Origin: Hyaloraphidium curvatum SAG 235-1
Taxonomy: Eukaryota; Fungi; Monoblepharomycota
Direction of reading: 5' to 3'
DNA: 64,000 nucleotides
Assembly (NCBI GenBank): GCA_025558095.1
Contig: JAIVFI010000006.1
Coordinates: 248,001-312,000, forward strand
Positions 1,509 through 30,563 of the stretch are shown piece by piece; within the stretch, counting starts at the first letter, position 1, and each line of letters opens with the position of its first letter. Below the pieces are notes generated by a model. It was not told the DNA's origin and did no database searches. It saw nothing but the letters and a program-made list of their open reading frames with translations. Both the position numbers and the translations under genes were made by a program.

Positions 1509-3050
1509 TCATTCGATCGTGCACCAGCTCTGCATGGTCGCGCGCACCCCCGCGCCCCTGAGGATCCCCACGAGCCCCACGGCGATGGTGACGAGCGTGG
1601 CCGCGATCCCCCTGACGAACCCGAACGTTACTGGGACGCCGAACAGCCTCGCCAGGTTCTCGTCCACAGCCCGCTCGAAACGTTCGAGCACGGCCACCTG
1701 CGCCGCCGCGGCCGTGGAGACGGGCAGCCGGCGGCCGGCGAACGCGAGCCGGATGTCGGCGGCCGCGCGGCCGTACAGCGCGGCGTTCCGGGCGACGATG
1801 CCATTGGCGGTGGCGAAATTGAGAAGGGCGAAGAGAAGCTCGAGGGTATGGAGGGCGAGGGAACCGATGATCCAGGCCGTTGCGCACCCGGAGCCAAACA
1901 TGAAGACGAGCAGCACCACCACCGAGAGTCCGAAAACCGCAGCGTGTGCGAGATTGTAGTCTTGCGAGGCCTTGGCTCTCGCACGCCACTTTGGCGCCAG
2001 CGTGTGGTGAAGCTCTATGTACGTTTCCCACGTGCCATTTCGTTGGCCTTGGGTTTGGGAGTCTGTCGTCAGCACCGGCTCTCCTTCTTGCGCGTCGGCA
2101 TCGGCGACGCAGAATTGGACGACCTCCGAGAGGGACATCGCGATGGCCCTCGCTTCGAGCCGGCCCTCCAACTCGAGCAGGGCAACATCCGTCGATATGC
2201 CCTCCAGGATGATGGACACGTGCTGCACGACATAAACTACGGGCAGGTAGGAAAACAGCGCGGCCTTCCAAGGCACCCCCCATATGGCATCGCCGAGAAA
2301 GACGGTCGGCGTCCACGACGCGAACAACCAGTAAACCAGCTGGGCAAGGATATTCGTGACGATCTGGCGCGCGAGCTGGATCGCCGACGATCTCCGGGGC
2401 AACCCCCCTGCGCACGACGACCGCGCGCACGGGCACCACGGGTCCCGATCGCGGTGCTCCAGCATCGGCCGCGGCCGGGGTCCCCGCTCCGCCGGCGCCT
2501 CGGCGTCCCCGGCTTGCGCCGTGCCCCAGCCCGACAGCTCGATCCAGCGGGCCAGGCCGCACCACGGGCTCGCGTCCTCCGTCGGCGGCCGGCCCCAAGC
2601 CGGAACGCGCTGCGCAAGGAGGACAACGTGGAAGGCCGCGCATTCGAAGGCGAAGGCTGCGACGCCGACGGCGGCGCCGCGCGCGGAGAAGGCGCCGGAG
2701 GCCAACGCGGGGCCCCAGGCCGCGTACGGGGCGGCGACGGCCACGGGGAGCAGGAAGAACAGCGTGCGCGAGACGGGCAGGCGGTTGAGCCGCGGCCACG
2801 CCTGCGCGGCGACGAGGGCGAACGGGACGCGGAGGGGCGCGAGGGCCGCCAGCAGCCGCGCGCGCGTCATGGGGTCCGCGGCGCGGAAGTCCGCCGCGGG
2901 ATCGCTTTCCATCGGCACGAGGGAGGCAAGCTCCGGCGCCAGCGGCGGTTGCAGGGCCGCGGGCGTCGGCAGCAGCGCGAGCAGTTCCGCGGCGCTGAAC
3001 ATGCCGCCCAGCGCCTGCGGCTCCTTGGGATTCGCCGCCGCCGCGTCCAT
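1509..3050 (-). CDS. multi-pass membrane protein, paralogue 1 of a three-member family (candidate 7TM ion channel/GRL-like)
   Basis: 3' part of ORF 1509..4163 from MDAAAANP; several hydrophobic helices; motifs shared with 17471-19025 and 29013-30563. Confidence 0.8.
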   Translation of the reverse strand: MDAAAANPKEPQALGGMFSAAELLALLPTPAALQPPLAPELASLVPMESDPAADFRAADPMTRARLLAALAPLRVPFALVAAQAWPRLNRLPVSRTLFFLLPVAVAAPYAAWGPALASGAFSARGAAVGVAAFAFECAAFHVVLLAQRVPAWGRPPTEDASPWCGLARWIELSGWGTAQAGDAEAPAERGPRPRPMLEHRDRDPWCPCARSSCAGGLPRRSSAIQLARQIVTNILAQLVYWLFASWTPTVFLGDAIWGVPWKAALFSYLPVVYVVQHVSIILEGISTDVALLELEGRLEARAIAMSLSEVVQFCVADADAQEGEPVLTTDSQTQGQRNGTWETYIELHHTLAPKWRARAKASQDYNLAHAAVFGLSVVVLLVFMFGSGCATAWIIGSLALHTLELLFALLNFATANGIVARNAALYGRAAADIRLAFAGRRLPVSTAAAAQVAVLERFERAVDENLARLFGVPVTFGFVRGIAATLVTIAVGLVGILRGAGVRATMQSWCTIE

Positions 3051-3264
3051 TTGCGAGAAGGCGACGACCGGCAGCGGGATCGATGCGCGATTCGGTGGCG
3101 GTTTGTTATCGCGAAGTGCGACTGGCGCCGAAGAACTTTCGATTTCGGCCCGCCAAGCCTGGCTGGAAGATCCGCGCGAACGGTCGGCAACGTGCGAGGA
3201 TGGCGAACGGGATATCATTCGAGTATTGATACAATTCGCTCCGCACCGCAGCATCCGGCAGCTT

Positions 3265-3987
3265 TCAGTTGGGGCACCTGGGGAAGCAGGCGTACGAGAC
3301 GGGGTCGTTCGCGCCGCCCACCAGCGGGCACCACTGGCCGCCGATACGTTGGCACTGCGTGGCGTTGAACACTCCAGGGGGAGCGCGCTTCGCGATGCGG
3401 GGGTCGCCGTCCCTCTTGGCCTTGGCGGGGAGTGCGGGCGGCAGCGCGACCGGGGCGTCCGTGGGCTCGGGCAGGTTGCCGGGCTTGGACAGCAGGCTGC
3501 AGATGGCCTTGTTCGGGGCGCACGTGCCGTCGGCGCAAAAGACGAGGCCGAATCCGGCGCAGTCCACGGGCGGCCTGTAGTTCTCCGGGCACTGGTCGGC
3601 CGAAGGCACGCAGCCGCCGTCCTGGCAGGTGCTCCAGCCGAGGTCGGCGCAGGTCCTGGGGCACAGGTCGGCGCTGGGGGCGCAGATGGAGCTGCTGGGG
3701 CATAGGGTCCAGCCGGCGGAGGTGCAAGTGTCGGCGAGGGCGGCGGCGAAGGCGTCGGTGGGGTGCGCGTCCGGCGCAACAACCCGGGGGACCACGGGGG
3801 GAGCGAGGCCGCGGGCTCGGAGGCCCTGGCAGGCGTAGATGTTCTGGGCACAGAAGCCGTTGAGGCACTTGACGGTGCCGGGGGGACAGTTCGCGGGGGG
3901 ACTCGGGCGGGCGTGCGCCGCGGGGAGCAGGGACACCGCCAGGGCCGCGAGCAGGAGGGCGGCGGCGAAGGCGCTGAGGCGGGCCAT
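3265..3987 (-). CDS. secreted cysteine-rich protein with CxDGxC-type repeats
   Basis: Signal peptide MARLSAFAAALLLAALAVSLLPAAHA; repeats CLNGFC, CQDGGCV, CADGTCA; two KR sites near the C-terminus. Confidence 0.75.
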   Translation of the reverse strand: MARLSAFAAALLLAALAVSLLPAAHARPSPPANCPPGTVKCLNGFCAQNIYACQGLRARGLAPPVVPRVVAPDAHPTDAFAAALADTCTSAGWTLCPSSSICAPSADLCPRTCADLGWSTCQDGGCVPSADQCPENYRPPVDCAGFGLVFCADGTCAPNKAICSLLSKPGNLPEPTDAPVALPPALPAKAKRDGDPRIAKRAPPGVFNATQCQRIGGQWCPLVGGANDPVSYACFPRCPN

Positions 3988-4648
3988 TGCTGCCGATAGA
4001 GTTTTGGCTTTATTTGAGTGTTGCTGGTTTTGGATTCGAGCTCGCGGTGGTGCTGTGCGGTGCCAAGGGGGTGCTTATGTAGGGTCTCGATTTCGGGAAA
4101 TGCGGCGCAGCAGCGTCCCGAACGGTCGGCAAAGCGGCCGAAGGTTCCAGGCGGCCGAAACACCGCATTCCGCGGTCTATCCGCTTCCGAACGAACTCAG
4201 CACCGCCGCTGCGCCGCGACGGTTCGTGCACAGCGTGGCGGTTCCGAGAGCGGCAGCGCGGTGCGCGGGCGGCTTGACCACCAATTCTCGCCGGGCCGAG
4301 GCGAAGAACAACCGATCGCAAACAGAGACAAGCATAGAGCGGTGCACACACCTGGGAGTCGAAATCTCACCGGCCTGTCTCCGCGGAAGTTCCCGCGGCC
4401 ACGCAGACCCTGCTTTGTGCGGCCAGTGCTTCCGCCCGCACACCTTCGAACAAGCCCAAGGCGCACCGAGCGAGCCCGTGCCATCGCGGACGCGATTCAG
4501 GCAGGTGATGAATCGATTCCCGGGACGGTGGTCGCGCGGCAGACGGAGGTGGTCGGTGACCGCCGTCCCGCCTGTGCGCCCGAACCTCCGCGGGGACGAT
4601 ACCCTTTCTCGCCAGCTCTCCCCCTTTTGCACGGCCGCACGCTCTCCA

Positions 4649-4965
4649 ATGGCAGTGAGCAGATCCCGCCCCCTTTTCCCGCCTGCGCCGCCGACCGCCC
4701 CCCGTCGACAGCGCCTCGTCAAGGCCTCCACCCTCAAGTCGGGCGACCGCCTGGTCCGCGACGACCGCGCCGTCGCGCTCAGCAAAGTCACGACGGACTA
4801 CGACGTGGTGCATGCGGACTATTACGACGAGGAACAGGTGCAGACGGTCACGCTGAGCTTCAGGCCCGACGAGGACGTGGAGGGTGGGTGCTGCGCTGCC
4901 TGGTGGGTAGGGATGGGGGCTGATGGGGTGCGTGGCGGGCAGTACTGGACAAGGATGAGCAGTGA
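4649..4965 (+). CDS. small (~66 aa) hypothetical protein, 3 exons (introns 4655-4711, 4884-4942)
   Basis: ATG GCA|gtgagc...cag| and |gtgggt...gcag| splice to MARLVKASTLKSGDRLVRDD...FRPDEDVEVLDKDEQ*; GC3-rich codon usage. Confidence 0.6.
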
Positions 4966-5395
4966 GCTTGATACCAAGGACGAGCAGCGGCTTGATACCA
5001 CGGTCGCGTTCGCGGGACCGTCGCAAGGAAACAAGGGGGGTCGGCGGGCGGATGTTCCAACTCCGCTTTCGCGATAGCGAATAACTGGCTGTTTAAATAC
5101 TCTCGAAATGGACAGATCCGCCCCGATTTCATTCGTCGCCATTTCCCGCTTGGGCCCGCCTGGCTCGCATTCCGGTCAGCTCTCGGGTCCGAACGGTCAT
5201 GTCCTCCACCGCCCTTCACTCGCACGCAAAAGCAACCAGCGACATCGGACGGGTTACGACGCAAAGCCACCGGATCCGAATGGATCGATCGTCTTTGGAT
5301 CGTCCGCCAGCGGATGCGCCCAGCTCGATCGAGCTGCATGCTTCGCCACCCGCAACAAAGGACGCGTCCCCTGCGCTCTTCGCTTCCCTTCCGCG

Positions 5396-6136
5396 ATGCC
5401 TCCCACCGTCAGCGACCGCGACCCCGCCTCCCTCTTCCTCGCCCTCTGCGCGCGCCTCTCGCCCGCAGTTCCGCCCACCGTCTCCGCCGCCTGGGCCTCC
5501 CGCCTCGCCTCGCTGTACTCCGCGAACGACCGCGCGTACCACACTTTGGCGCACGTCGAATGGCTGTTGAGGCTGCTCCCCGGCTCCCCCGGGCACCCTC
5601 TCGGCGCGTTCACAGACGGCGGGGAGGACTGGACCGCCGCGGAGCTGGCGATCTGGTTCCACGACGCCATGTACGACCCGCGCGCGGGAAAGGGGGACAA
5701 CGAGCGCGCGAGCGAGGCGCTGTGGCGCGAGTTCGCGGACGAGGCGTTGGTTTCCGGAGGGATGGCGGGGAAGGTGTCGCGCATGATCCTGGCCACGGTA
5801 GACCACCGCCTTCCCGAGCCCCACGACGCGACCGACGCCGCGTTCCTGGACATGGACCTCTCCATCCTCGCCGCCCCGCCGGGAAACGGTGCGGGTAGCG
5901 ACGCCTCGGGTAACGCCTCGGGATGGGACATCGGCTACGACGAATACGCCTCCCGCATCCGCCGCGAGTATTTTCACTATCCCGACGAAGCGTACAAAGC
6001 CGGCCGCGCCGCCGTCCTCCGCGGCTTTCTCGCCCGCGACAGGCTCTACTTCTCCTCCCGCGCGCGGGACTGGGAGCCCCGCGCGCGCGATAACCTCGCC
6101 CGCGAGATCGCCGCCCTCTCCCCGCCTCCCTCCTAG
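5396..6136 (+). CDS. predicted metal-dependent HD-superfamily phosphohydrolase (COG4339-like)
   Basis: Motifs RAYHTLAH, LAIWFHDAMYDP, DNERAS, ILATVDH, FLDMDLSIL, YDEYASRIRREY; intronless. Confidence 0.85.
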   Translation: MPPTVSDRDPASLFLALCARLSPAVPPTVSAAWASRLASLYSANDRAYHTLAHVEWLLRLLPGSPGHPLGAFTDGGEDWTAAELAIWFHDAMYDPRAGKGDNERASEALWREFADEALVSGGMAGKVSRMILATVDHRLPEPHDATDAAFLDMDLSILAAPPGNGAGSDASGNASGWDIGYDEYASRIRREYFHYPDEAYKAGRAAVLRGFLARDRLYFSSRARDWEPRARDNLAREIAALSPPPS

Positions 6137-6140
6137 CCCT

Positions 6141-7744
6141 TCACGCGTGCGTGCCGGCCTTTTGTCCGGGCGGCAGCCCCGCTTCCTCCCCGGCGCCGTC
6201 GGCAACGTCGGCGCCGTAGACTTCCCTCCCGCCCGGCCCGCCGCGCGGCGCCAGCACCCCCGCGAACCCCGCGTGCCCGGGCACCCCGAGCGCCGCCTGG
6301 CCCGCGCAGCAGAAATCGTACAGCGATTCCAAGGTGTCGGACCAGATGTCTTCGGGGAGATCGGGGGCGAGGTCGAGGATCGGGGAGGGGAGCGCGGACG
6401 GGGCTGGGGGAGGCGGAGGGTAGAGCGCGAGGAGGTCCGAGAGGGTGGTGGGGGCGGAGGGGGCCGGGAGGTCGAAGTACTTGCCGGGGAGCATGGAGAT
6501 GAAGGAGAGCACGGCGAGTGGGTTCCTAGAACAACCGAGAGCCGTGAGCTCGGAAGCGCACGGACGGGCAGACGGGGCACGAACAGGTTCATCTTGGCGC
6601 CCGCGCTTCCGACCGCCACGAAATCCCCCACGAACTTGCCGTCCGCCTTTTTCTCGACGCCGACCACCGCCAGGGCTTCCGAAACGCCCGCCTTGCCAGC
6701 CTCGGCGCACTCCTTGCAGGCCGCAAGGTCGTGCGGGTGCCGCGCGCACACGGGCACGCTCGCAAACGAGGTGCACACGGGGTGGGGCTCAGCAGGGCCC
6801 GCGGGGCCGAAGGGCGAGGCGCGGCCGCAGCACGTCGCAAAGACGGTTCCCTGCGGGACCTGCGCGCCGTGCGCGAGTCGATCTGAAACGGCGGATCGCG
6901 CGTGGTCAGCGGAAACCGCAGCGAAACCCGGAGAGGACCCACCACGGAGGTACATCCCGACCGCCGCCACCACGCTCCCCACCGCCGTCCCCTCGCCCTC
7001 GCCTCTCGGGAAGAACCCCTCCTCCCCCTCGTCATCCCCCGCTTCCTCCACCAGCGCCCCGCCCTGGACCACCGCGCCCGCGTCCGTCAGCGGGACGATG
7101 CGGCCCGACGAGACCGCGATGTGCCATTGGCGCAGCCACGCGTCGAGCAGCCGCGCGAGGTCCGGCACGGGGGGCGGCGGCGAGCCGGCGAGGCGGCCGA
7201 GGAGGAGGGAGAGGCGGAGGGCGGCGTCGGCGAGGACGTCCGGGGAGAAGGAGGGGTCCTGCTGCCGCAGAGCGGGAGGTTGCGGGGATGGGTGCGGGGA
7301 CATGCCGCCGGCGGGCGATGGGAACAGGGGCGTGTAGTCCGCCGCGGGCTCCGAGAGCGCGGGGGAGAAGCCGGCGAGCTGCGCGGCGCGGAGCCACGCC
7401 TTCTTGCGGAGCGCGTTGAGGAACACGAGGAGCAATTTCGTGCCTTCCGTGGTGGACGAGACTGCCCAGAGGTCGCCGTCGGCCGCGTCCGTGTCCGCCA
7501 TCTTCCTCGCCGAGCGCGCGAACATCGCTGCGTCCCACCGAGATCCGTCATCGCGCGGCGGCAGCGCGTCCGCCGCGACCTCCAGCAGCAGAGCGCGGGA
7601 AACGAGGGCGCCCGGGATCGACGCGCACGTCGCGCAGGGCGGCCGCAGGAACGCCGCGTTGGGGTCGACGTCGGGCGCATCGCGAATGCGGCCGCCGGGA
7701 GACGCGTGGCGCTGGCCGAAGAGGAAGGTGCCGGGGCAGGACAT
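6141..7744 (-). CDS. hypothetical protein with Cys/His clusters; intron 6526-6584
   Basis: The 5' part of ORF 5216..7744 joins the 3' part of ORF 6141..6776 through a 59-nt GT-AG intron (MNL|NPLAVLS); CATC and TCCG...HPVC...VCARHPHDLAACKEC clusters. Confidence 0.55.
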
Positions 7745-7994: not shown

Positions 7995-9602
7995 TCACCT
8001 GCACCAATCCTCCAGCCCCCGCATCGCCTTCTTCGCCGCCGTGCCCTCCATCTCCCTCGCCAGATCCCCGAGCGGCTTCCCGAACCCCCATTCGGACGCC
8101 AGCACCTCCCTCCCCGGCAGCGCCTCCCTCGCGCGCTCCAGCATCGCTTCGCACCTCGACGCGTTGAGCAGGGCCGCGGAGCGCGGGTAGACTGCGGTGC
8201 CCGGGCCCGGAGGCCGGAACGACGGCGACGGCAGCCCCATGTGCGCCTCGGCATGCAGCAGCGCCGCGTGCACCACGAGCGCGAGCTTCCTCGGATCCGG
8301 CTCGATCACCGACAGGTCCCTGGCCGGCTGCACGTGCTCGCCGTATCGCTCCCTGAGCGCTGCGAGCTCCTCCCTCTGCGGTACCCGCGCCTCGTGCGCC
8401 TCCGTGGGGTAGTAGAGGGCGGCGACGGAGGTCGAGGTGCGGAACACGTTTTCGATGCTCCCGGCGCGGCCGGTGGCGGGTTCGTGGTAGCACACGTAGA
8501 CCATGGCGGCGCCGGGGGGGAGGAAGAGGGAGGAGAAGGCAATGCCGCCGCAAGGAGTGATCAGCACCGTAGTGCGCGCCATGGCGTCCATCTGCGCGGG
8601 GAACTTGAGGTCGGATGGGTTGAGGACGTCGGTGGGGACGCCAAAGGTGCGGGCAAGGTGGGCGGCGAGGGCGCGGACGTTGGCCACGGCGCGCTTGCCC
8701 TTCTTTTCCAGGAGGAGGATGCGCTGCGAGCGCGGACGAGCGCTTGGATCGCGTCCCGCGCGGGCGAGGAGATGCGCGCCAAAGTAGACCCAGTCGCCGT
8801 CGCCGGCGTGCTTGATGCCGTAGTGCGAGCCCCCGAGGGCGAGGTTGCGGGCGCAGAAGAAGCCTTCGGGGACGGAGCCCGAAGTGAGCAAGGGCCGGCG
8901 CGTGAGCAGCTGCCGCGTGTTGGCGGCCTGCACTTTGCATCCGATCGGGGGTCCGGCGCCGCCGAGCGTGCAGTTCGGATGCACGATGAGCAGCGGGTCG
9001 GCGGTTGCTGGCGAGCCGGGCGGAGCCAGCATACCGAAGCGCCTCAGCAAGCGGAAGGCGGGGAACAGCTCGTCGCCCAGGTGGTGCCCCCAATTGTGCG
9101 GCCAATAGGTGCCGATCAGCGCCGCGTTGTCCGCGGCCAACCACGGTGCGTCCGCCGGCGGGCTGCCGCGCACCACGTCGACCTCGGCGCGAACCTCCCG
9201 CATGTTCGGGTCCCACGACCGCAGCGCGAGCGGCGGGAGGGCCGGCGAGAGGTTGTCGTCCCGCGGCAGCGCGTCCGCATGCGCGCCCGCGTAGTACCGC
9301 ACGCGGGCGACGGTGACCGCCGCGCCTGCGTTGTGTACGCTGACCTCGCCGCCGTGGTCCCCCAGCCGCACGCAGACGTTCCTGAACGAACACGACCGCA
9401 GCGCTGCCGATCGCATCTGCACGCATCGGTGCGCGGACGCCGCGGGGTTGGGCGGCCGCGGGCCCCACGCGGCCCCCGTCCCGCCGGGCAGCGGGTCGGC
9501 CGGGTCCGCCGCTGGCTCCGGCTCCCGCTCCTCCCGCCGCAGCCGCACGGCCAGGAAACAAACAAACAACACCGCGGCCGCCGCGAGCACGCCGTGCCGC
9601 AT
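7995..9602 (-). CDS. type II membrane glycosyltransferase, GT61-like
   Basis: N-terminal TM anchor; SCSFRNVC, HNWGHHLGDELFP, KRAVANV, FPAQMDAMARTTVLITPCGG. Confidence 0.75.
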   Translation of the reverse strand: MRHGVLAAAAVLFVCFLAVRLRREEREPEPAADPADPLPGGTGAAWGPRPPNPAASAHRCVQMRSAALRSCSFRNVCVRLGDHGGEVSVHNAGAAVTVARVRYYAGAHADALPRDDNLSPALPPLALRSWDPNMREVRAEVDVVRGSPPADAPWLAADNAALIGTYWPHNWGHHLGDELFPAFRLLRRFGMLAPPGSPATADPLLIVHPNCTLGGAGPPIGCKVQAANTRQLLTRRPLLTSGSVPEGFFCARNLALGGSHYGIKHAGDGDWVYFGAHLLARAGRDPSARPRSQRILLLEKKGKRAVANVRALAAHLARTFGVPTDVLNPSDLKFPAQMDAMARTTVLITPCGGIAFSSLFLPPGAAMVYVCYHEPATGRAGSIENVFRTSTSVAALYYPTEAHEARVPQREELAALRERYGEHVQPARDLSVIEPDPRKLALVVHAALLHAEAHMGLPSPSFRPPGPGTAVYPRSAALLNASRCEAMLERAREALPGREVLASEWGFGKPLGDLAREMEGTAAKKAMRGLEDWCR

Positions 9603-9964
9603 CCCGCCCCCGGATGGGACGCGTGTCGTGTTTGCCGGCGTCGATGGTGAATCCTGAATTCAGACTTCAGCGCGCCCCCCATCCCGCACGGCCGCATCCG
9701 ACTGCCGTGGCGATCATGTCGGTTCGGATCCCGTCCTTTACACAGAAAGACCGCAACCGCATTCGCCGCGCCACTCGAGTCGTGGCCGTCCATCGATTGA
9801 GGGCATCCTGGCCCCTATCATCACAAACATCCTTCCTGCAAGCCCACATTCGCAGCCACTGGCATCGGTATATCCTGTCCGCTGCAATTTCTGAAAACAG
9901 ATCCATGCCGATGTCGTCGATTCCATATACCATCACAACTTCGCATCCCGCATCTTTCCCCGCG

Positions 9965-11787
9965 TCACTGACCCCTACCGTCCCTCTCCCTCTCCACCTC
10001 CTCCCTCAGCGACCTCGCAAACGCCTGCAGCTCCCCGAACGCCGGCTTGGCCCTCTCCTCGGGGGGCAGCACGCCCGCGAGGTCCTCGATGCGGTTGCCC
10101 TGCCGGTCCACGCCGCGCACGCCGTGCGCGAGCTTGCCCACCGTCAGCACGGAGAGGTCGTCCTCGAGCTGGCGGTAGTACTTGATGGCCCGGTCCAGGT
10201 CGCCCAACGTCTGTTTCGGCAAGTCAGCGGGTCGCTCGGCGGCGGGGTTGCCCATCCGCAGGTCACACCCACCCGGAACATGGATCCCAGGATCGTCGAC
10301 ACCGACGCCAGGCACTCGGTGCACCCCACCGCGTTGGGAACCCCCGCATCCAGCGATTTGAGCGCCACCTCCCTCGCCTTTTCCCCGAACTCCTCGGCGC
10401 TCGCCGCGCCCATGCGGCCCGTGCTCGCGTACGTCTCCATGATCCCCGTGAGCTGCACCGCGAGCCCGCACGGGTCGTTGACGCCGTCGAGGTCAAGGAG
10501 GACGCCGTGCAGGCGGTACGAGAGGGAGCGGAGCAGGGCAGACGGGGAGAGCTCGGGGAACTTGGGCTGCTCGGCGGCTCCGCCGCGCGGGGGGTGGAGG
10601 GCGGGGTCGGAGGGGGCGGCGTCGAGGACGAAGAGGTACTCGGAGATGTTGTTGAAGGCGGTGATGAGGACGTTGCGGTTCTTGGTGGGGCGGAGGAAGG
10701 GGAGGAGCGGTGATTTCGGTGCCGAGGGCGCGTCGGGTGGCCCGCCGGCCTTGACTCCCGCGGCAGCCTCGTCCAGGAGCTTGCCAAAGTCGAGGGCGGC
10801 GATATCGCCAACCGCGGGTGCCAGAACCTCAACCCAGCCGAGATCGTTGTCGACCGTCTCGGGCGTCACAGCAGCATCGCTGCCGTCCTTGGCGAGGAAC
10901 GCGTTGGCGGCGCGCCGGTTCCACTGCAGCGCCCAATCGATGGCCTCCTGCTCCGTCGCCGTCTCGTCCATCATTTCGGCGCCGCCGGCGGCGTAGAGGG
11001 CGATTAGACCAGCGCGATCCAGGCGAGAGATGCGTGCGTCCTTGGGCTCCACCTTCCACGTTTTGCCGTCCTCCTCCAGGGCGGCGGGCGCCTTGACCAG
11101 AGACCAGAACAGGTTCTCGTACAGCTCCATCGCCTTTTTTCCGTTGCCCAGCCGGGACTCGAGGTTGGCCCACCGCATGATCAGCGCCGTGACCAGCTCG
11201 CCCTGGTGGTCGACGCCCTCCTCGACCGCCTTGCCGAGGGCGACGTAGTACCACTGTCCCGCCAGATGCGGTCTCCCGCCGGTCTCGAGCGCCATCGCGT
11301 TGAGCAGCGGGCGCCGCACCGACCGCGGGAACATTGCCAGCATCGGCGAGTCCAGCGTGCGCTGCACGAGGTACTCCTGCGCCAGCCGCACAGCCGACGG
11401 GCCGAGCAGCAGCCCGACGATCAGCACGACGAATGCGGGATGGAAGTACCACGGCCGCGGCGGCCTGGGCGGCGGGGCGGCGGGCTCGGGTGCCGGGGCC
11501 GGCTGCCCCGCGCCGGGCGCCTCCTTCGCCTCGTACGCGAAGCCGCGCCTAGAGATCCAAGCATTCGATAGGATGTCCCGGCAGATGGCCGGCGACGGGG
11601 CCGGGAAACGCCCGGCGGGCGGCGCGGGCAGCGCCCATCTCGCCGGAGCGGAACGCGTCGAGAACGCGGCGGCGGAGCACGGCGCGGCCCGCAGCAACGA
11701 CGTCCGCAGCAGAGACGCCCTCGGAGGAAAGCACGCCGGCGCGATCTGGCCGCGCGCCGCGGCTAGGAGCCGGCACGTCGCGGACAT
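9965..11787 (-). CDS. mitochondrial inner-membrane TPR-like protein, Mgr3-like (i-AAA protease adaptor); intron 10211-10272
   Basis: Arg/Ser/Ala-rich presequence, one TM helix, then FPRSVRRPLLNA...WYYVALGKAVEEGVD...VTAL pattern. Confidence 0.55.
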
Positions 11788-12038: not shown

Positions 12039-14480
12039 TCAGGCCGCGCCCTTCTTCTCCAGCTGGTCCAGCACCCTCCTCAGCAGCCCCTCCAGCTCGC
12101 CCACCTGCTTCGCCCGCACCTCCGCGATCTCCTCGAGCTTCCTCACCGCCCCCTGCAGGCCCCCCAGCACCCGATCCACCTGGTCCGCGAACCCGTGGAA
12201 CTTTTCCTGCCGATCCTCCATCCGGTCCAGCCGCTCGATCACCCGCCTGCCGAGGTCCTTGTCCTCGTCCTGCGTCTCGACCTCGTCCGCGTCGTCGGAG
12301 TCCTGCGACACGATCCGCAGCGACCCAACCTGCTCCGCGCGCGCCAGCGCCGAGACGGGCGGCGGGGAGACGGTCTCGTAGACGGCGATCAGCAGCGCGA
12401 AAGGGAAGGTGACGACGGTCCACACGACCGCCTCGAGGGGCTTGAAGAACGGGAAGGGGCGCAGAGGGAACATGAGCACGTCGAAGAGGTTCAAGGGAGG
12501 GAAAAAGGGGCGGTCGTCGGCCTGCTTCCAGAGCTCCAGCACCCGCACGGCGAACTGGTACTCGTACAGCGTGTCGGCGTTGTCGACGATCGATGCATAC
12601 GACGAGTTGAAGATGGCTGGCGTGACATGTCAGCGCCGTCCCCATGCAGCGCCAAGCAACGCTACCCACCGATGAGCAGGTTCATGAGCACGATCCCCGC
12701 GACCGCGAGCCAGCACATGAACAGCACCGGCCCGTAGATCGGGTGGTACGTCTCGGCCATGTCGTAGTCGGCGGCCTGGAGCACCGCCTTGAGCAGGAAG
12801 TTGATGGTGCTTCCCGGGGCCAGCGCCGGGTTCAGCCCCACGACTGGCATGCGCGACACGTCAGCCCGCATGCCCGGCGGCGGGGCCACCGACACCCACA
12901 GGTCTGCGCGAACCCCACGAGCACGAGGGCGAAAAGCACCAGGAACAGCAGCGAGTCCTTGAGCATCGCCTTGGTGATGAGCATGCTCGTGCCCATGTAG
13001 CGGTACCCCGAGAAGATGGAGAGCATGCGGCACCACAGGAAGATGGCGTTGATGCTGACGAGGTCGTCTGCGGGGCAGATCGCGGTCAGCAGAAGCCACG
13101 AGCAGGCAGATGGGGTTTGCGCACAGGCCATGTCGTTGTAGTACGCTAGGCGGCCGCTGTCGGTCTGGTTGATGGCGTACATCCGGATCGCGAAGGCGGT
13201 GATGAAGATGCCGTACATCTGCGAGGTGCGTGAGCGTCCGTTGCGGCACACGGCAGGGGAAGGCTCACGATGGCGTCCAGGCCGTTCCACAGGTTGAGGA
13301 AGTAGATCGACAGGCCGACCTGCGCGGCCTGGTAGAGCTCGTGGAGGAAGTAGGCGATGGCTTGGGCCCACTGCGATGAAAGTCAGGCTCCCACAGCGTG
13401 CGCGCGGCGCCGGCGCGCCCGTACCATCAGCCACTCCTCGATCTGCGGGTACTTGTCGCGCCCGTTGACGACCAGGGTGAAGTTGAACACGAAGATGGCG
13501 AACACGCCGATCTCGATGAAGTACTGGTAGCGCGGGATACGGAGCCGCCCGTCCAAGATGCCGCCGAAGCCGACGTCCTGCTGCGTAGCCGCGCGGTAGG
13601 TGGGCAGCATGTGCGTCGGCCGAAGCATGAGCTGCCAGGGCGAGGGCGGAGGTGTCAGAATCACAGAGCCGGCAAGCCCCGTTCGGAGACCCACCGAACC
13701 CCGCCAGATCTCGTCAATGCAGTCCTGGACCGCCACGTCGGCTAGGAAATGGTCCGCCTTGATCTCCACCGCCTTTTCCAGGGCCGACGACACCGGCAGG
13801 AGGTACGCCCCGCCGTCCGCGGTCATGATGAGGTTCTGGTTCCCGTCCTCGCCCGGCGAGAACATGGGCAGGTAGCCCTGCCCGTACTCGAAGCCGAAGA
13901 GGCGGACCAGGTTGCGGTACGTGTCGGTCCTCTGGATCCGCTCCGTGAAGGTGAGCTGCCGCCCGACCTCGGTCCCGTCGGCGCGGTACTGCGTCGTCCG
14001 CCGCCAGGGACGCTTCTCCCGGCTCTGAGGCGGCTCGATGACCTCGATGGGGTCCGGCCATTTGTTCGCCAGCACCCAGACGAAGAGCTCGCCCCTGTCC
14101 GAGTAGGTGTGGACCAGCTCCTGGGCCAGCGACTCGGCGTAGGCGGCGCGGGACTCGTTCAGCTGCTTCTTGAACTCGTCCGCGTCCGCCTTGAGCTGCG
14201 CCCGCTCCATGCACACCAGGGCGACGAACACGGCCGCCAGCCCCGCCGCGTCGCGCGCCTCGTCGACGACACTTTGCGGAATCGAGATGCCGACGCGAAG
14301 ATCGGGGTCGATGGGCCGCCGCACGCGCCGGCAGATGAGCGCGTACACGTCGGTAACGGCGGAGACCATGGAAGGCGGAACGCGGGGTCTCTCGCGGGGG
14401 GCATCGTCGTCGCGTTCGGCGGGCGGCGGCGCGTCGTGCGGCGAGTCGGCGATGGAGACGGAACTGCTGGGCGCCGACAT
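12039..14480 (-). CDS. YVC1: TRP-family cation channel, Yvc1/TRPY1-like, multi-exon
   Basis: SALEKAVEIKADHFL..VQDCIDEIWRG, LRIPRYQY, TM segments across ORFs 13383..14480 and 12662..13249, PIYGPVLF...LMNLLI, PFFPPLNL, C-terminal coiled coil. Confidence 0.8.
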
Positions 14481-16084: not shown

Positions 16085-17470
16085 GCTTGGATGAGGACCA
16101 CGGGATCGACCATCGCCAGCGCTGCAACGCTTCGTCGATCCACTTCGCTCCGTTGGTCAAAGAGCTGGGGGACATCCTGAAACACTATCGGTTCTAGGAA
16201 CTCGCCTTTCCAAACGAGGTCCGTAGTAGATTCGTTTTGCCCATTCCGATTGTACGCCGATACTCGGAGTTACAGCTCCCGTTCCACCGGCTGCGCATTT
16301 TCGCTATGCGCGCTCCCCGGATACTTCCACTCCACGTCAATCAGGCCACGTTCTGGTTGAGCGCCTTCAGACCGTTGACTAGGTCCTTCTCGTTTACGCC
16401 GTTACAGGGCACGTGGAAGAGCAGGCGCTCCTTGGAGCTCTCGTGCAAGATGGAGAGGACCGCGGATATGTCGTTGAACTTCACGGTCTTGGCCGAAGGA
16501 ATGACCTCGAAGAGATCTGCTCCATGCATTCCGATTAGCGGCGACCACCAGGTCCCACCTAGCTCATTCTCGTACGGACCATCCACATTGCTAACCCGGA
16601 GCAAAGCCCTCTCTCGTGAACCTCCGAAGGCGTATCACCTTCCTCACAAGCACGCCGGGATCCTCGGGGTCGTCATGGCTCTTGAAAATGTGCTGGAACG
16701 CAGTGCTGGAAGAGGCGTTCAACTTCCCTGCACAGTCTACCGCGCTCGCCAGTTCTCACCACGCATAGGCCGTCTTGTCCTTGAAGCCCGTGCGGTCAAG
16801 TCTGTCTTCCATGGCCATGCGCGCCGACCGAACCGCCGACATGGAGAAATGGTCCTCGACGGGCACAGCAGCTTGGACGCCGGGGCCGGCCACCACTGCG
16901 AGATTGCTTTCCTGGTTCGTCACCCCCGCGGCGTGGCCGACGGCGGTCGAGGGCGTGATTGGGGAGAGTGGCGCGTCGTTGTCCGGGCTGCGAGCGTTGC
17001 GGTCAGAGGGGCGCGTCGGCAGCCGCGGCACTGGCCCACTGCGTGGCCATCGTTTCAGTAGGCGCGAGAAGATGTGGCGATGGCGGCGGACGTGTTCGAA
17101 GATGGCCGCGATGCGGGCAAAAGCGCCTCTTGACCCTCTTGGCCGGGAACGAGTCATCACCAACGCGAGGGCGCCAATTGTAGGTCCCGATCGACGCTGG
17201 AACGGATCCAGCTAGACGGATTCCCGGAGCATAGTCGCGTTAGCATTCAGACAGAGAGTTCGTTATCGATAGAGGATGGTCGAGGCCGGATGCGTGCGAT
17301 CGGCGGAGAAGCCTTTCTCTCGTCGACATTGCATGAGGCGAGTTCACGAGAACATAAACCTCATCATCTGGAACAATTGACGAGCAAGCAATACAATTAA
17401 CGCAATGAACATTAACTCCCCACTTAACCACTCTTGGGAACTAAACCACCGTCCGCCGCGAACTCGCCTT

Positions 17471-19025
17471 TCAGGGCACCGGGCACACATTGTCCACGAC
17501 CATGCTCACCCCCGCCGACCTCAGCACGGACCACAGCGCCGCCGCGATCGTCACCACCGTGACCACAAACACCCTCACCGTCCCCAGCCCAACGCGGCTC
17601 CCCGCGAACCGCGCGCTGTTCCGCTCCGCCGTGGCCATGAGGAGCTCCAACTGCCTGTCGTGCGCGTCGGCGCGGGCCAGGGCGCGCGGGTCGGCGCCGT
17701 TGGGCGCGGCGGCGCACGCCTTGCGGAGGGCGAGGCGGGCAGAGACGTACAGGTCCACGAAGGCGTCGATCTGCGAGTTGCCGATGGCGAGGGGGACGAG
17801 CACGGCGAGCAAGTTCACGAGGAGGTACAGGAGGAAAATGGGGACGAAGGCCGGGATGCAGGAACCCCCGGCGACGGAAACGATGCCCCCGAGCGCGCAT
17901 CCCAGGAACATGATGGCGAAGCGGGTGAAAGAGTAGCCGACGGTTCGGGAGCGGCGTTTCCAGTTCTGCAGGTGAAGCAGTAAGGGGCGGTTGCTGCGCG
18001 CATCGCGGAGAAGACTTTACCTCTGCGATTCGCTCATGCAATTCGAGGTACGTTTCGACGGCGGGCGGCTCCGCGTCCGGCGCTCCGAGCTGGGCGCCGG
18101 GGTCGACGCTCTTTTTCAGCCTTTCGACCAGCTCGTCCAAAGCAAGGGTCATGGCGCGGCGCTGCAGGCGCTTGGCCAGCTTGAGCAAGGGGGCCGACTG
18201 TCCCAGGATCCCGTAAAGAAACGAAGACCCGTGCGCCGATAAAGATATGATGGCCAGCAAGCCCAGGATGGCCGTAAACCACGTTGTCCAGAAAACCGGC
18301 CCGAATGTGACGATGGCAGTGTAGTTCCAAGTGAACTGGATGGCGAGCAGCAAACTGCATTTGAGGCTGGATTCGCCCCAGTAGATCGCGCCCACTTCCG
18401 TCCCCACGCGGCTCAGGCACGTCGGACAAGCGCATTCAGGATCGTCGGGCACGTGGGTGAGCAGCAAGCTGGAGGGTTCGGCGGCAACGAACTCGCGGAA
18501 GCGGACGAGCAGGGCGACGGGCTGCCGCGAGTAGTCGCCGAGGTTCCGCGGATTGGAGGCTTCAATGACCGGTGCAAACTTGTCGATGTGCTGCATTATG
18601 AGCGCGCCGATAATGACCGCCAACGTCGCACCAACGGCGTAGCCGAGCTGCACGCGGGAAAACGTCTTGCCGTTCTCGACGGTGACCCCGCCGCCCGCAG
18701 GAATGAAAGCAAAGAGACAGGCAACAACGGCGGCAGGAAAACTATAAGGTAGAGTCGTGTAGAGTGCGACGATACGAATCGCCTTGTGCAGCGTCAGCGC
18801 GAGTGGATAGAACCGGACTGCGGCGCGAGTCACGGGTTCTGGTATCACAGCCAGCACCTCTGCAAGCGGCAGCCTCTCGGTGTCAGCGAGCTCGACGCTT
18901 CTGGGGTCTTCTTGCGCGGGCCCCGGGTCCTTGTCCGGCCTGTCGTCCGCGAGAAGAGCCGGAGGGGGAGCCGCCCCCGGCAAAAGCGCCGCCCACTCCC
19001 GCCGCGAAAACTTCACGGGAGACAT
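17471..19025 (-). CDS. multi-pass membrane protein, paralogue 2 of the three-member family; intron 17966-18020
   Basis: ORF 17424..19025 joins ORF 17471..17911 via gtaaag...ctgcag (55 nt), giving YLELHERIAE|NWKRR; family motifs present. Confidence 0.8.
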
Positions 19026-19139
19026 AACGAGTGCCTCAGCTCAAGCTGCCATGGCCAGATTGGAGCAGCGCTGCCACTAGGAGTTCCGAGGACGGTCTGC
19101 TCCCTCCGATCGCGCGCGCCCTGATCGAGCCGTGCACAA

Positions 19140-24995: not shown

Positions 24996-25028
24996 TGATC
25001 AAAACAACATCCCAAAATCGCGAGCACC

Positions 25029-26233
25029 CTACAACTTGTTCCGCTTGTCCGTCTTGTTGGCGTACGAGCCCGGGAACCCGCCCGTCCTCAGCAGCTCGGC
25101 GTGAGTCTCCTCGGGCGTGTTCTCCTTGCACGTCCTCATGTAGCAGAAATCGAGGAAAGGCTCGGTGGGCCTCTGAAGGGGGTCCTCAGGGCCGATCGTG
25201 TGGACGACCCGGCGAACGTCGGCCATGGCGCCCGACTGCTTGCGTGTGCGGTCAACGGCATCCCAGGGGAGGTTGGAAGTGCCGCTCATGTAGTGGTTGG
25301 TCAGCTTTGGGCGCAACGAAGAAAAGCGAGAAAGAACGACATCAGCGCCATCAACACCACACACTGCGTGAAAACCTACGACGCGACGGTAGTCCTGGGA
25401 CCGGTTCTTCGTCGATCGGTGGAGCAGGTACCCGTTGAAGAAAAGGACGCTGCCTGGCTTCAGATCCACCGTCACTTCCTCGCCCCAGCCGTCCGACTTG
25501 GCCACGCCGTCGAAGCCGTACGATTCCTTCGCGAAATCGTACTCGTCCACGTTGGTGTGCTCCCGCTGCGGGAAGAGGATCCCCCTCCGGTGCGACCCGG
25601 GCAGCACGCGGAGCGTCCCGTTCTCCGCCGTCGCGTGGTCGATGGCGATCCAGATGGCGGTGAGCGAGCGGTCGCGCGTTGGAATATAGGCCTCATCCTG
25701 GTGCCAGGCCTGCCCCTGGAAGCCAGGAGGCTTCACGAAGAGCATCGTCTGCATGCACTTGACCGAGCCGTCCCACCAGCCGGGCGCCATGTGCGCTCCC
25801 GTGAGCTGGCCGAGGATCGGAGCGATCCGGGGGTGCGAGATGTAGCGCCGCATGACCGGTGAGACGTAATGGGGCATGTGTATGGCCAAAACATTCTTCA
25901 GGACCTCCGAATCGGAGGAATCGGCTGGCAGAGGCTTGATGTTCGACGAAGGATAGCCGCCCTGAGTTTGAGAGACGCCACCAACGACAAGCGAGGGCAG
26001 CCAGTCACTCAGGAGAGGTCTAAGATAGTAACGCAGGTGCCACGCACCTTCGCAATTGTAATGAAGTCGCGCTTGAGTTCCTCGAGCTCAGCGGAGGGGA
26101 CGAGCCCGTCCACGATGAGGAACCCATCCCGCAGGTAAGCGGCCACCTGCTCCTCGCTCAACGGCGGCCTAGAAGCAGTTGACGGCGCCTGCCACGCCAA
26201 ACTCGGCGATTCCAGGGCGGGAGACACGGACAT
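25029..26233 (-). CDS. phytanoyl-CoA dioxygenase (PhyH)-family Fe(II)/2OG oxygenase, multi-exon
   Basis: LSEEQVAAYLRDGFLIV, KPPG..GQAWHQD, WIAID.AT.ENGTL.VLPGSH, LLHRS..N.S..YRR. Confidence 0.9.
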
Positions 26234-26897
26234 TTCGGTGCCGGGCAAGAACTGGCGGACCAATCCTTTGCACCGTAGTTTGCCACACACAGTCACGCTT
26301 CTAGCACGCTTTACTGCTTTCACGCTTATTGTCGCCTCGTGCTACAACCAGTTATGCTGTCCTCTACGCAATCCGGAACCGCCGGCGCCCAGAGCCGCGC
26401 TTCTTCCGAGGGACTTGGCAACGCCCCGACGGGACGAAACGAGGAGCTGGCTTCCGAGGGCTCCGGCCGCGTTCTGACGGGCGTACCCCGCAACGACCTC
26501 GAGGAAAGGAAGGGGCTTCAGCAGATGGCCGAGGTGCGTGTCTTATCTAGTTCGAACGGGAGAGCTCGAGTAACGGCGCGCTGACGTGGACGCCGATGCC
26601 AAAGAAAGCCGGAAAGGGCTCCGAGAACAAAGGTGAAAGGGCAGCGGGGCGAATATTCTTAGCCATTGACATTTTCTGGCCAGCCGGAGTTATCAAGGGG
26701 GAGGAAGACCCGGCCAAAGTCAAATCCGAGGACTCGTCTGTCAATCGCGCTGCTGGCGCCGAGTTCTCGGGAAGCACTGCCGGCGAGCTGCCTTCGACGA
26801 CGGCTTCGGCGATCAAGGAGACGGAAAGCGGTCGCGGGGCTCGCTAGAGGCTGGCTTTTGACGATGATCAAGGTTCAGTCACATACAGCTCACGTGC

Positions 26898-28784: not shown

Positions 28785-29012
28785 CTGGCCCGCGTCGCGC
28801 CGAGAGAGCGCGCCGCAAACCGGCCCCTATCTCCGCATCTGGCAAGCTCCTCGGGGCCGGTAACACGGCGACGACGGCGGAATCCTTCGCTCCACACTGG
28901 CTGCCGGCGGCAACGACAACTCGCGTGACGACGGCGCGATTGGGTCCGCGATCGTGTGGCGCGTGCGCACGGCGGGGGGGATCGCGGCGGACAGCTTCCG
29001 CAGAGAGCAATC

Positions 29013-30563
29013 ATGGCGGAATCGAACGTGCCTCTCGAACGCGGTCCTCTCAAGCTGAATGCCGCCGAGCTCGCTGTGGTCTTTCCGCGGCCCGCGCCGC
29101 AGGTCCCGCCCGAGGCATCGTTGCCAGAGGGCCTGAGCCGGGCCTCGTGCAAAACCGAACTGGGTGCGGATGCAGATCGTGAGTCGACCGGACCGCCAAG
29201 TGTCGAATCTGTACTTGTGACGCTGCAAGCGATGGAGCAGCCCGCGCTGGCTTCTATGCTTGCCACGGTCCGCGCGACTTCCGCGCTCCACATCGCGACT
29301 CTGGGGTCGCTTGTCATCTACTGCGCCGGAACTGCAGCAACCGTCATTGCAGCAGCGGGACTCGTATTCTGGCTCAATGACGGATTGTTCGGAACGCGTC
29401 AGATTGCAGCCAGCCTTGCCGGCATTGCCCTGTTTTGGGCCTGCGTGCTGGTTCCCCAAATCATGGGTGCCCAGCTCTCACGTGCACGGCCCGGCTTGGC
29501 TGAATGGTTTGCCGTGAACCTCGTCGCCATTCGCAGCTGGGGCGACGCCGTTCTCGCGCACTCGCCGCTGTTCGACCACGTGGACGGTGATGCAGCCTGC
29601 CCTTGCAGCCGGTGCTGCTCTGGCGTGATAGCATGGTCGTTTTGGGAACGCGTCATCCGCATCGTGCCGATGCACCTCTTCTCGGCCTTTGCGATCTTCA
29701 CGATGGCTTGGACCCCGCTGGTCCACTTCGGATCAGCATTCTGGAGCAGTTGGTGGGGGATCACCTTGGGCTCTTTCCTCGTGATTTTCGATGTAGTTTA
29801 CAATGCGGGCGTTGTTGTCTCACGATTGCCTGGTCCCAGTTCGGCGGAAGTTGCGCTAGCAACTCGTATCTACCTGCGAGCGAGCTTCCGTGCGATGCGT
29901 GACCTTTTGGAGCGATCCCGCTCGTTGCTTCTGCACACTGGTGACCAAATGGGGCCTCCAGATGATCACAGGAACGACGAACCCGGGGACTCAGCATTTA
30001 ATGGGCAGGAGCTCTATGTTCAGCTGCACTTTAGCTACAAGCGCCGCTGGAAACTTCTTGGCTCGCAATCCGCCTTTACGAACTTCTACACCGGAATAAC
30101 GCTGTCCCTTTTCCCTGCTTCCATTCTTGCTGCAATCATTATCAACCTCGCGGCGGGCACCTGCGTGACAGCATGGAGCATTCTCTCGTTTCTCACCGTC
30201 ATCTACACTTTGGCCTCGGACATCGCCTCGCTTCCGGCTCTGAACTCGCAGATCGATGCGCTTGCGCGGCTTTACTCAGATGCGCGGGTCTCGATCCGTG
30301 CAATGCTCGCTGAAGCCGCACACCTTCCCGAAGGCAACCCCGTCCGCTCTGCCGCGGCCAGGGAGCTCAAGGCGCACGCAGAGCTGCTCGCGGTTTTCGG
30401 CGACGTCGAGGGGCTGCGTGCCACGTTTGTTGGGATACCCATCACATGGGGCCTGGCCAAGACCTTGGCCGTCACGATGATCACGCTGGCGGTGGCTTTG
30501 TGGAGCGTGCTCAGAGGCATTGGGGTCGTCTTCACGATGCAGAGCGTGTGTCCTGGAGTTTGA
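29013..30563 (+). CDS. multi-pass membrane protein, paralogue 3 of the three-member family, intronless
   Basis: About 7 hydrophobic segments; HVDGDAACPCSRC; C-terminal FVGIPITWGLAKTLAVTMITLAVALWSVLRGIGV. Confidence 0.82.
   Translation: MAESNVPLERGPLKLNAAELAVVFPRPAPQVPPEASLPEGLSRASCKTELGADADRESTGPPSVESVLVTLQAMEQPALASMLATVRATSALHIATLGSLVIYCAGTAATVIAAAGLVFWLNDGLFGTRQIAASLAGIALFWACVLVPQIMGAQLSRARPGLAEWFAVNLVAIRSWGDAVLAHSPLFDHVDGDAACPCSRCCSGVIAWSFWERVIRIVPMHLFSAFAIFTMAWTPLVHFGSAFWSSWWGITLGSFLVIFDVVYNAGVVVSRLPGPSSAEVALATRIYLRASFRAMRDLLERSRSLLLHTGDQMGPPDDHRNDEPGDSAFNGQELYVQLHFSYKRRWKLLGSQSAFTNFYTGITLSLFPASILAAIIINLAAGTCVTAWSILSFLTVIYTLASDIASLPALNSQIDALARLYSDARVSIRAMLAEAAHLPEGNPVRSAAARELKAHAELLAVFGDVEGLRATFVGIPITWGLAKTLAVTMITLAVALWSVLRGIGVVFTMQSVCPGV

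Follow-up and report, generated by a model that had tools for sequence, protein, structure and literature searches.

The 64-kb stretch analysed here (the window), from the genome of the aquatic, non-swimming fungus Hyaloraphidium curvatum, contains three related genes, each encoding a protein of about 500 residues. Gene 1 (1509..3050, minus strand; 513 aa, 1.8e-121 against the family HMM) and gene 3 (29013..30563, plus strand; P0001, 516 aa, the member used for the structure model) are intact, intronless open reading frames. Gene 2 (minus strand), for which the sequence-only reading had mentioned no interruption, is split by a 55-nt phase 0 intron (GT..AG, 17966..18020) that brings a frame change. 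Exon 1 (18021..19025, 335 codons) encodes the N-terminal motif, TM1-TM4, a His/Cys cluster and the start of the TM5 extension, and exon 2 (17471..17965, 164 codons plus stop) encodes TM5-TM7b and the C-terminal tail, giving a coding length of 499 codons. Scored separately against the family profile, the two exons reach 1.8e-57 and 1.2e-45, and gene 3 has the same His-to-Trp spacing as is measured over the splice junction. For gene 2 and other spliced copies the exons were analysed one at a time, never as a joined protein.

The motifs previously quoted for the three genes were all found, each in its place and in the same order. Genes 1 and 3 share 27% identity over 532 columns (BLASTP, E=2e-26), and their likeness is therefore not due to chance. 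Third codon position GC lies between 0.68 and 0.93 across all four exons. The NCBI model of gene 3 agrees with the frame used here, that of gene 1 is 197 residues longer at the N-terminus (710 aa in total) and is probably over-extended, and the gene 2 locus has no gene in the NCBI annotation. A six-frame HMM scan found exactly these three family copies in the window. In a FastTree phylogeny, used solely to show that the three are not sisters, they sit in three separate subclades, and an origin by tandem duplication was rejected on this basis. The copies are nevertheless not unlinked, as the earlier description had it, since all lie on one contig.

The AlphaFold model of gene 3 (pLDDT 89.9, pTM 0.88) contains long helices at residues 247-307, 334-382 and 387-436, followed by a helix at 443-462, a hairpin at 471-476 and a helix at 479-502. 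Family-mean hydropathy peaks at positions 109, 140, 223, 260, 371, 393 and 491, each on a model helix, indicating seven transmembrane helices. The loops after TM1, TM3 and TM5 are nearly uncharged and about 5-10 residues long, and those after TM2, TM4 and TM6 are charged and about 60-85 residues long; extracellular loops shorter than intracellular loops, seen in both model and hydropathy, are a recognised feature of 7TM ion channels (7TMICs). Because of this charge distribution, and because the N-terminal motif co-varies with the TM4 extension and the C-terminal tail with the TM5-TM6 turn, the N-terminus is computationally assigned to the cytosol and the C-terminus to the extracellular side, as in 7TMICs. 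Co-variation above the shuffled-null maximum links residues within the anchor bundle (Y335-H455, H339-Y421, I428-L452, R301-E333), on the extracellular side (A387-M509, N122-F239, T383-A495) and between the N-terminus and the anchor side (V23-I286). Twenty co-varying pairs join same-side residues versus two that join opposite sides (background 0.57); structure model and co-variation were drawn from the same alignment and are not independent.

Two further 7TMIC features are present. The cytosolic parts of the segment comprising the TM4 extension, TM5, TM6 with its long extension and TM7a (29841..30416, plus strand; gene 3 residues 277-468) form an anchor-like bundle in the model, with matching co-variation. 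TM7 is split, a feature of 7TMICs described in PMC12635824: a beta-hairpin (30417..30446, plus strand; residues 469-478) with strands 471-472 and 475-476 lies between TM7a and TM7b, both in this model and in a second one, and its Gly474 is present in 89 of 90 members. The sequence-only reading, which had named a different topology as evidence against itself, had predicted seven transmembrane helices, an N-in/C-out orientation, long cytosolic TM4-6 extensions and a split TM7 with hairpin, and hydropathy, model and co-variation recovered this architecture. Helices 64-73 and 77-91 precede TM1 and were considered as an N-terminal re-entrant loop (TM0), which is not among the criteria used by Himmel et al. 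A co-variation block at 76-78 x 109-117 showed an all-against-all pattern and was put aside as a probable alignment artefact.

Conservation peaks in TM7b, the hairpin and the cytosolic segments and is weakest where TM1-TM5 cross the membrane (0.16-0.20), in agreement with the pattern published for 7TMICs. The N-terminal helix (29058..29087, plus strand; residues 16-25, consensus EWLALFP, column identity 0.49), whose V23 co-varies with I286 in the TM4 extension, equals the pore helix in conservation, as does the cytosolic TM2-TM3 loop cluster H-x3-D-x2-C-P-C-x2-C (29577..29615, plus strand; residues 189-201). H189, C196, C198 and C201 of this cluster are invariant (90/90), and it is a probable metal site, putatively for zinc. 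Also invariant are N411, C384 at the TM5-TM6 turn (30162-30164) and C513 in the extracellular C-terminal tail (30519..30563, plus strand). Strands 384-386 and 506-508 in the model, together with the A387-M509 pair, make an extracellular C384-C513 disulfide probable.

The putative pore helix TM7b (30447..30518, plus strand; residues 479-502) carries a stripe of small or hydroxyl residues at 484, 488, 491, 495, 498 and 502, which fall on one face with perfect 3-4 heptad spacing. The canonical TYhhhhhQF signature had been reported as not intact. Indeed, its Thr is kept in exact register in 90/90 members (T491), Tyr is replaced by V/L, Gln by S/G/T, and Phe by V/I/L, so that only the Thr and a hydrophobic residue at the Phe position are retained. 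Counting from the hairpin Gly, positions +3 (V/I), +4 (D/T/S), +10 (T) and +17 (the invariant T) align ungapped with NvecGRL1 and TadhGRL1 when compared by eye with a published alignment.

Searches with the gene 3 model identified insect Gr/Or channels as the sole credible fold matches. In Foldseek against the PDB, all 14 listed hits with probability of at least 0.5 were Gr64a (8jme/8ze0), Gr43a, BmGr9, AgamOR28, AaegOR10 or MhOR5; these Gr and Or entries scored 0.5-1.0, and other folds, including long-helix membrane proteins, scored at most 0.18 with rmsd above 25 A. The ranking was repeated with an independent shallow-alignment model. The lack of any structural match to 7TM ion channels, named beforehand as evidence against the assignment, was thus not observed, but the match stayed sub-threshold (best E=0.015; TM 0.25-0.42 depending on target length; rmsd 9-17 A). 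Accepted 7TMICs reach higher values, 0.47-0.8, though with TM-align, a different method from the Foldseek TM scores used here, and Himmel et al. caution that permissive Foldseek hits carry a high rate of false positives.

Sequence searches of Pfam, NCBIfam and the PDB gave no significant match, whether the query was a single protein, a profile of the whole family or one of the C-terminal part. In single-pass HMM searches neither the full-length nor the C-terminal profile matched a Pfam 7TMIC model, those for Gr/Or included, or a PDB Gr/Or chain, and none of the 90 members matched the DUF3537 or PHTF-like models at E<=0.1. The transporter or enzyme match that had been named beforehand as evidence against the assignment did not appear in the profile searches; GPCRs/opsins and known transporters (MFS, ABC, ALMT) gave only short matches (E>=0.56) and fold probabilities of at most 0.18. 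GPCRs are N-out/C-in. A GPCR or opsin identity was rejected given the N-in topology and the lack of a profile or fold match, and a weak opsin match near a WTP motif (E>=0.7) was dismissed as chance.

The suspected genome-wide repertoire proved real and larger than guessed. The family HMM retrieved 407, 347 and 225 clusters at E<=1e-3, 1e-10 and 1e-30, and all 30 clusters sampled among the best 150 came from H. curvatum, on many contigs. The genome holds at least about 150 copies, and probably 300-400. Median pairwise protein identity is 27%, and dN/dS, computed per exon, is 0.11-0.45 in the closest pairs, indicating purifying selection. Word-indexed searches returned only 4-5 H. curvatum proteins; because such searches are blind at about 27% identity or to other lengths, their blanks are uninformative on other taxa. 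Metagenome and viral contigs, scanned at the DNA level with sensitivity to close relatives only, gave no match. Our literature search found no paper tying Hyaloraphidium to 7TMICs or ion-channel receptors, although the data of Himmel et al. may include members. This is most likely a so far undescribed family, lineage-specific, very large and old in H. curvatum.

Insect Gr/Ors and the family share seven transmembrane helices, an N-in/C-out orientation, an anchor of TM4-6 and TM7a, the hairpin and the TM7b Thr register, as well as a large divergent repertoire with conserved pore and variable TM1-5. Identity is 10-12%, and the family proteins are longer (about 500 versus about 400 aa). Unlike insect Gr/Ors, they have a longer TM2-TM3 loop with the invariant His/Cys cluster and a probable disulfide from the TM5-6 loop to the C-terminal tail, and they have lost the Tyr and Gln of TYhhhhhQF; the host, unlike insects, is a fungus without nervous system or flagellum. 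The family is not placed in insect Gr/Or proper, as its sequences have neither an intact TYhhhhhQF nor a Pfam Gr/Or match. Closer in setting are the unicellular GRLs or Class-A Euk7TMICs (Spizellomyces GRL1, Thecamonas GRL1-6, Vitrella GRL1-6; PMC7746228, bioRxiv 10.1101/2023.08.30.555482), which likewise occur in early-diverging fungi or protists, have a degenerate TM7 motif (the Spizellomyces proteins retain one of its four positions) and, by eye in the published alignment, show equal hairpin-to-TM7b spacing. That alignment, from which trimming removes loops, gives no clear sign of the His/Cys cluster or of the terminal Cys. Known unicellular species carry 1-6 7TMIC genes (PMC7746228), known chytrids one each and plant families 4-12 members, as against at least about 150 genes in H. 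curvatum. Plant DUF3537 and PHTF-like (Class-B) 7TMICs have the same core fold class, and in PHTF-like proteins the TM2-TM3 loop is lengthened as well.

Taken together, expansion, architecture and fold hits support the proposal of a lineage-expanded Gr/Or-like family, most likely a fungal 7TMIC lineage that is new and has expanded massively; it is placed at superfamily level only. We give a probability of roughly 0.7 to this explanation as a whole, an H. curvatum-specific family with a 7TMIC (insect Gr/Or-like) fold whose gating mechanism is inferred. The predicted fold itself is very probably that of a 7TMIC; that the members are also ligand-gated sensory channels, by analogy, is somewhat favoured. 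By analogy with Gr/Ors, four subunits would assemble via the anchor bundle, four TM7b helices would line a central pore with Thr/Gly/Ser facing inward, and V/I/L499 would form an outer hydrophobic gate. A small molecule in the variable TM1-TM6 pocket would open the cation pore, with different compounds acting on each paralogue. Through the C384-C513 disulfide, the pore helix would be tethered at its outer end to the TM5-TM6 turn; the His/Cys cluster may act as a structural zinc site or as a redox or metal input. With such a repertoire, a cell that does not move would be able to read dissolved chemicals via ion flux. Counting against this explanation, H. curvatum lacks a flagellum and chemotaxis therefore cannot be the output. 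The fullest form of this model, in which about 300-400 ligand-gated 7TMIC chemoreceptors evolved independently in a non-motile unicellular fungus with a metal site, a disulfide-tethered pore helix and a Gln-less gate, we hold at even odds.

Two other functions for the same fold appear unlikely, to a similar degree. The paralogues could sense molecules of antagonists (a bacterium, parasite, virus or other strain), with ion flux triggering defence or cell death. A repertoire of hundreds of scattered, strongly diverged copies in a cell that does not move suits such an arms race as well as it suits chemosensing, and LRR-kinases, ankyrin and MYND genes and NTPases flank family loci; however, each locus has different neighbours, with no consistent defence-gene linkage, and dN/dS is far below 1 in every pair tested, although whole-exon averages could mask selected sites. 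Equally, the proteins could serve other ends than ligand gating, such as the permeation of solutes, a constitutive leak or signalling as receptors through a partner of the His/Cys loop. Loss of the Gln involved in the Gr wetting transition, the pore-like conservation of the cytosolic cluster and N-terminal motif, and the fact that 7TMIC function is known for animal members only, none having been demonstrated for a non-animal one, agree with this; the Gln loss and the restriction of known function to animal members also count against the Gr/Or-like reading. Against the alternative, no membrane elements are more conserved than TM7b and the hairpin, which carry a perfect small/hydroxyl stripe; TM1-TM5 vary most, as expected for a shared pore with variable pockets; and accepted GRLs have also lost most of the TYhhhhhQF motif.

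Less probable still is an unrelated helical membrane family whose Gr/Or likeness arose by convergence or is an artefact that long helices produce in Foldseek. No comparison gave a significant E-value and TM stayed below 0.5, but the fold probabilities separate many Gr/Or entries from other long-helix membrane proteins, and hairpin, split TM7, anchor contacts, sidedness and Gly-to-Thr spacing are concordant. Selfish or decaying repeats without a cellular role (mobile-element cargo or pseudogenes), as high, dispersed copy number, intron poverty and some unannotated or frame-changed copies might suggest, are scarcely credible given the invariant residues at 27% median identity, long intact frames, GC3 bias and called neighbours without transposase, and are largely refuted by purifying selection.

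The family bears on the standing question of what non-animal 7TMICs do. Its growth to hundreds of paralogues under purifying selection, in which the putative pore is conserved and the pocket helices vary, is the strongest evolutionary hint yet of diversifying 7TMIC receptors outside animals, and it indicates that whole 7TMIC lineages can escape sequence-seeded screens. If the fold prediction is right, a fungus has a set of such receptors as large as that of insects; if the fullest form of the model is true, no earlier case is known of 7TMIC receptors expanding on a large scale outside animals, and the ionotropic chemical sensing would be of a kind not known in fungi. The family offers a natural experiment in gating when the conserved Gln is missing, and the cultured fungus offers a panel of mostly intronless genes for direct channel assays. 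The expansion is also a clue to the lifestyle of H. curvatum, which is entered as 'unknown' in PMC6899921.

The sequence-only reading had placed three paralogues of one multi-pass family in the window, and all three genes and their quoted motifs were recovered. Gene 1 (1509-3050, minus strand) and gene 3 (29013-30563, plus strand) each occupy an intronless frame, of 513 and 516 aa respectively, and their proteins are 27% identical (E=2e-26). Gene 2 proved to be a family member at 17471-19025 on the minus strand, but not a single frame: the frame changes at a 55-nt GT..AG intron (17966-18020), and each of the two exons, compared one by one with the family profile, matched it strongly. Window position 1 is record position 248001 of JAIVFI010000006.1 (assembly GCA_025558095.1), where the gene 3 protein maps exactly; its named relatives are all H. 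curvatum hypothetical proteins. In the NCBI annotation gene 1 runs to 710 aa, probably an over-extension, and 16085-19139 has no gene, even though gene 2 lies there as a family member complete with both exons; annotation-based counts of the family are therefore too low. A family HMM scan found no fourth copy within the 64-kb window. The three genes lie in separate subclades of a star-like tree and thus represent dispersed, old paralogues.

Other genes share this neighbourhood. An unannotated 494-aa gene of family-like length (6141-7744, minus strand) gave no match to the family HMM. A 702-aa TRP-type cation channel gene with TRPY1/YVC1 and Ion_trans Pfam matches lies between genes 1 and 2 (~12039-14480, minus strand), with no evidence of a functional link to the family. 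Across 19140-40563 the neighbours are ordinary metabolic genes, listed as inositol phosphatase, sulfatase, P450, PhyH dioxygenase, CAP59 mannosyltransferase, epimerase, NDT80, NUDIX, deaminase, rhodanese and AAA ATPase.

The anticipated architecture of seven TM helices, N-in/C-out, with a kinked TM7 and cytosolic extensions of TM4-6, was borne out by hydropathy, charge pattern, an AlphaFold2 model and co-variation (residues numbered as in gene 3). Averaged over the family, hydropathy peaks seven times (at 109, 140, 223, 260, 371, 393 and 491). Short loops with almost no charge follow TM1, TM3 and TM5, while the N-terminus and the loops following TM2, TM4 and TM6 combine length with charge, indicating an N-in/C-out topology. 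The gene 3 model, built from a 137-sequence alignment (pLDDT 89.9, pTM 0.88), predicts that TM4, TM5 and TM6 run on as long soluble helices; a helix at 443-462, a hairpin of two strands (471-476) and a helix at 479-502 come next. Contacts were probed by mean-field co-variation among 122-163 paralogues, accepting pairs above the shuffled-null maximum. The cytosolic pairs Y335-H455 (TM5ext-TM7a), H339-Y421 (TM5ext-TM6ext), I428-L452 (TM6ext-TM7a) and R301-E333 (TM4ext-TM5ext) together make up what PMC12635824 defines as the anchor bundle in Gr/Or channels, and the pair V23-I286 places the N-terminal EWLALFP helix against the TM4 extension. On the extracellular face, pairs connect the first two loops (N122-F239), the TM5-6 turn with outer TM7b (T383-A495) and the same turn with the C-tail (A387-M509). 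A strong block at 76-78 x 109-117 was set aside as a probable artefact because it lacks helical periodicity, so that a re-entrant TM0 is no more than a candidate feature of the family.

Eight residues (H189, C196, C198, C201, C384, N411, T491 and C513) are invariant in 90 full-length members. The cytosolic cluster H189/C196/C198/C201 is best read as a putative zinc site, and C384-C513, both extracellular and adjacent by co-variation, as a putative disulfide. Column identity is 0.42-0.45 in the hairpin and TM7b, falling to ~0.3 for the anchor extensions and to 0.16-0.20 where TM1-TM5 cross the membrane, a ranking that agrees with that reported for 7TM ion channels (7TMICs: insect Gr/Or, GRLs, DUF3537 and PHTF). 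Topology, bundle, hairpin and conservation pattern are shown by computation. Counted from the hairpin glycine G474 (89/90), TM7b carries V/I at +3, D/T/S at +4, and T at +10 (50/90), +14 (76/90) and, invariably, +17. By eye, this register was aligned with the Nematostella and Trichoplax GRLs of Benton et al. 2020 (PMC7746228), in which +17 is the T column of TYhhhhhQF with no gap and both proteins have T at +4 and +10. As had been remarked from the sequence, the motif itself is not intact: T is kept, whereas the Y, Q and F positions are V/L, S/G/T and V/I/L. Small or hydroxylated residues occupy positions 484, 488, 491, 495, 498 and 502, all of them on one helical face.

The family most likely comprises tetrameric ligand-gated cation channels, a reading in which we infer oligomer, conductance, ligands and cellular output. 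Four subunits would assemble through the anchor bundle, with a hydrophobic residue at 499, the outer end of TM7b, as the gate. The variable TM1-TM6 pocket would set ligand specificity, the pore helix and the TM5-6 turn would be coupled through the putative disulfide, and the cytosolic domain may be stabilised or modulated by the His/Cys site. H. curvatum, a relative of the Monoblepharidomycetes among the early-diverging fungi, has neither flagellum nor rhizoid, and its lifestyle is listed as "unknown" (PMC6899921; PMC8371127). Because it does not swim, an output in growth, spore release, dormancy, uptake or defence is likelier than taxis; that the proteins are specifically defence-type surveillance channels seems unlikely. 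Non-gated or non-channel use of the 7TMIC fold appears equally doubtful.

The proposed resemblance to Gr/Or channels drew support from Foldseek. Against the PDB, the gene 3 model matched Gr64a first (probability 1.00, E=0.015), 14 of the 14 listed matches with probability >=0.5 were insect Gr or Or structures, and all other folds had probability <=0.18 and rmsd >25 A; a poorer 8-sequence model returned the same class. Specific as it is, the match is weak: its TM values of 0.25-0.42 stay below the published 7TMIC threshold, although they come from Foldseek alignments in which the 516-residue model was left untrimmed and are not directly comparable with the 0.47-0.8 that accepted divergent 7TMICs reach by TM-align (PMC9998090). 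Single-pass profile searches found no link at sequence level to Gr/Or, DUF3537 or PHTF. Convergence of an unrelated family on a Gr/Or-like form is quite improbable. Anchor, hairpin and motif T in register are shared with insect Gr/Or, but motif Y and Q are not kept; with TYhhhhhQF and Pfam tests negative, the family falls outside Gr/Or proper. All five architectural criteria of Himmel et al. (bioRxiv 10.1101/2023.08.30.555482) for the 7TMIC superfamily are present. The family is probably a new 7TMIC lineage that has conserved elements peculiar to it; no paper describing it was found in the literature, a coverage distinct from the deposited data of the 2023 7TMIC screen.

In a Foldseek search of BFVD, the only high-probability viral matches to the gene 3 model were uncharacterised giant-virus proteins, mostly ~440 aa: Catovirus CTV1 A0A1V0SCD1 (probability 1.00, E 0.012, TM 0.31/0.35), Edafosvirus A0A3G4ZRZ0 (0.63), Yasminevirus A0A5K0UB49 (0.60; 577 aa) and Mimivirus LCMiAC02 A0A4D5XEV6 (0.57). 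These may be viral 7TMIC-fold proteins, on which no literature was found.

The large repertoire hinted at by three copies was substantiated. An 8-row profile searched against 1.84 billion representatives clustered at 50% identity matched 407 proteins at E<=1e-3, 347 at 1e-10 and 225 at 1e-30, counts inflated by split gene models and deflated by clustering and missed genes. Sampled across the best 150 of the 407, 30 of 30 proved to be singletons from H. curvatum, spread over many contigs, 29 of them identified by name and one by its place on the contig of the window; most of the 347-407 matches are presumably H. curvatum, and ranks 151-407 could include other fungi. Independent scans of DNA added six further copies, namely gene 2 and five in sequence flanking other loci; two of the six are unannotated or annotated on the wrong strand. 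None had a full-length match of >=50% among the best 150, and the family therefore exceeds 150 members.

Among the other H. curvatum loci, L005 (JAIVFI010000022.1) has four members in 20 kb, with family-bearing stretches at 2751-6526 (minus), 9024-10567 (plus) and 17255-18868 (plus). Among the four is a tandem pair of recent origin (71-88% identical; dN/dS 0.11-0.26). For one copy the annotation shows nothing but a 243-aa ORF on the other strand, and for another it covers no more than the final 189 aa. Paralogues also adjoin the family proteins P0004 (L004:4959-6524, minus) and P0139 (L007:8583-9855, minus). Four longer database models (P0009, with two matched stretches, P0055, P0078 and P0113; 698-788 aa) may result from fusion or over-extension in gene calling, or may be genuine domain fusions.

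Median pairwise identity across the family is 27%, and the closest pairs have dN/dS of 0.11-0.45, computed exon by exon, which indicates maintained genes; that the copies are junk without a cellular role is scarcely credible. Known fungal 7TMICs are single genes in two Spizellomyces species, and protists have <=6 and plants 4-12, in contrast to the >150 of H. curvatum, a repertoire of a size that only animals otherwise show.
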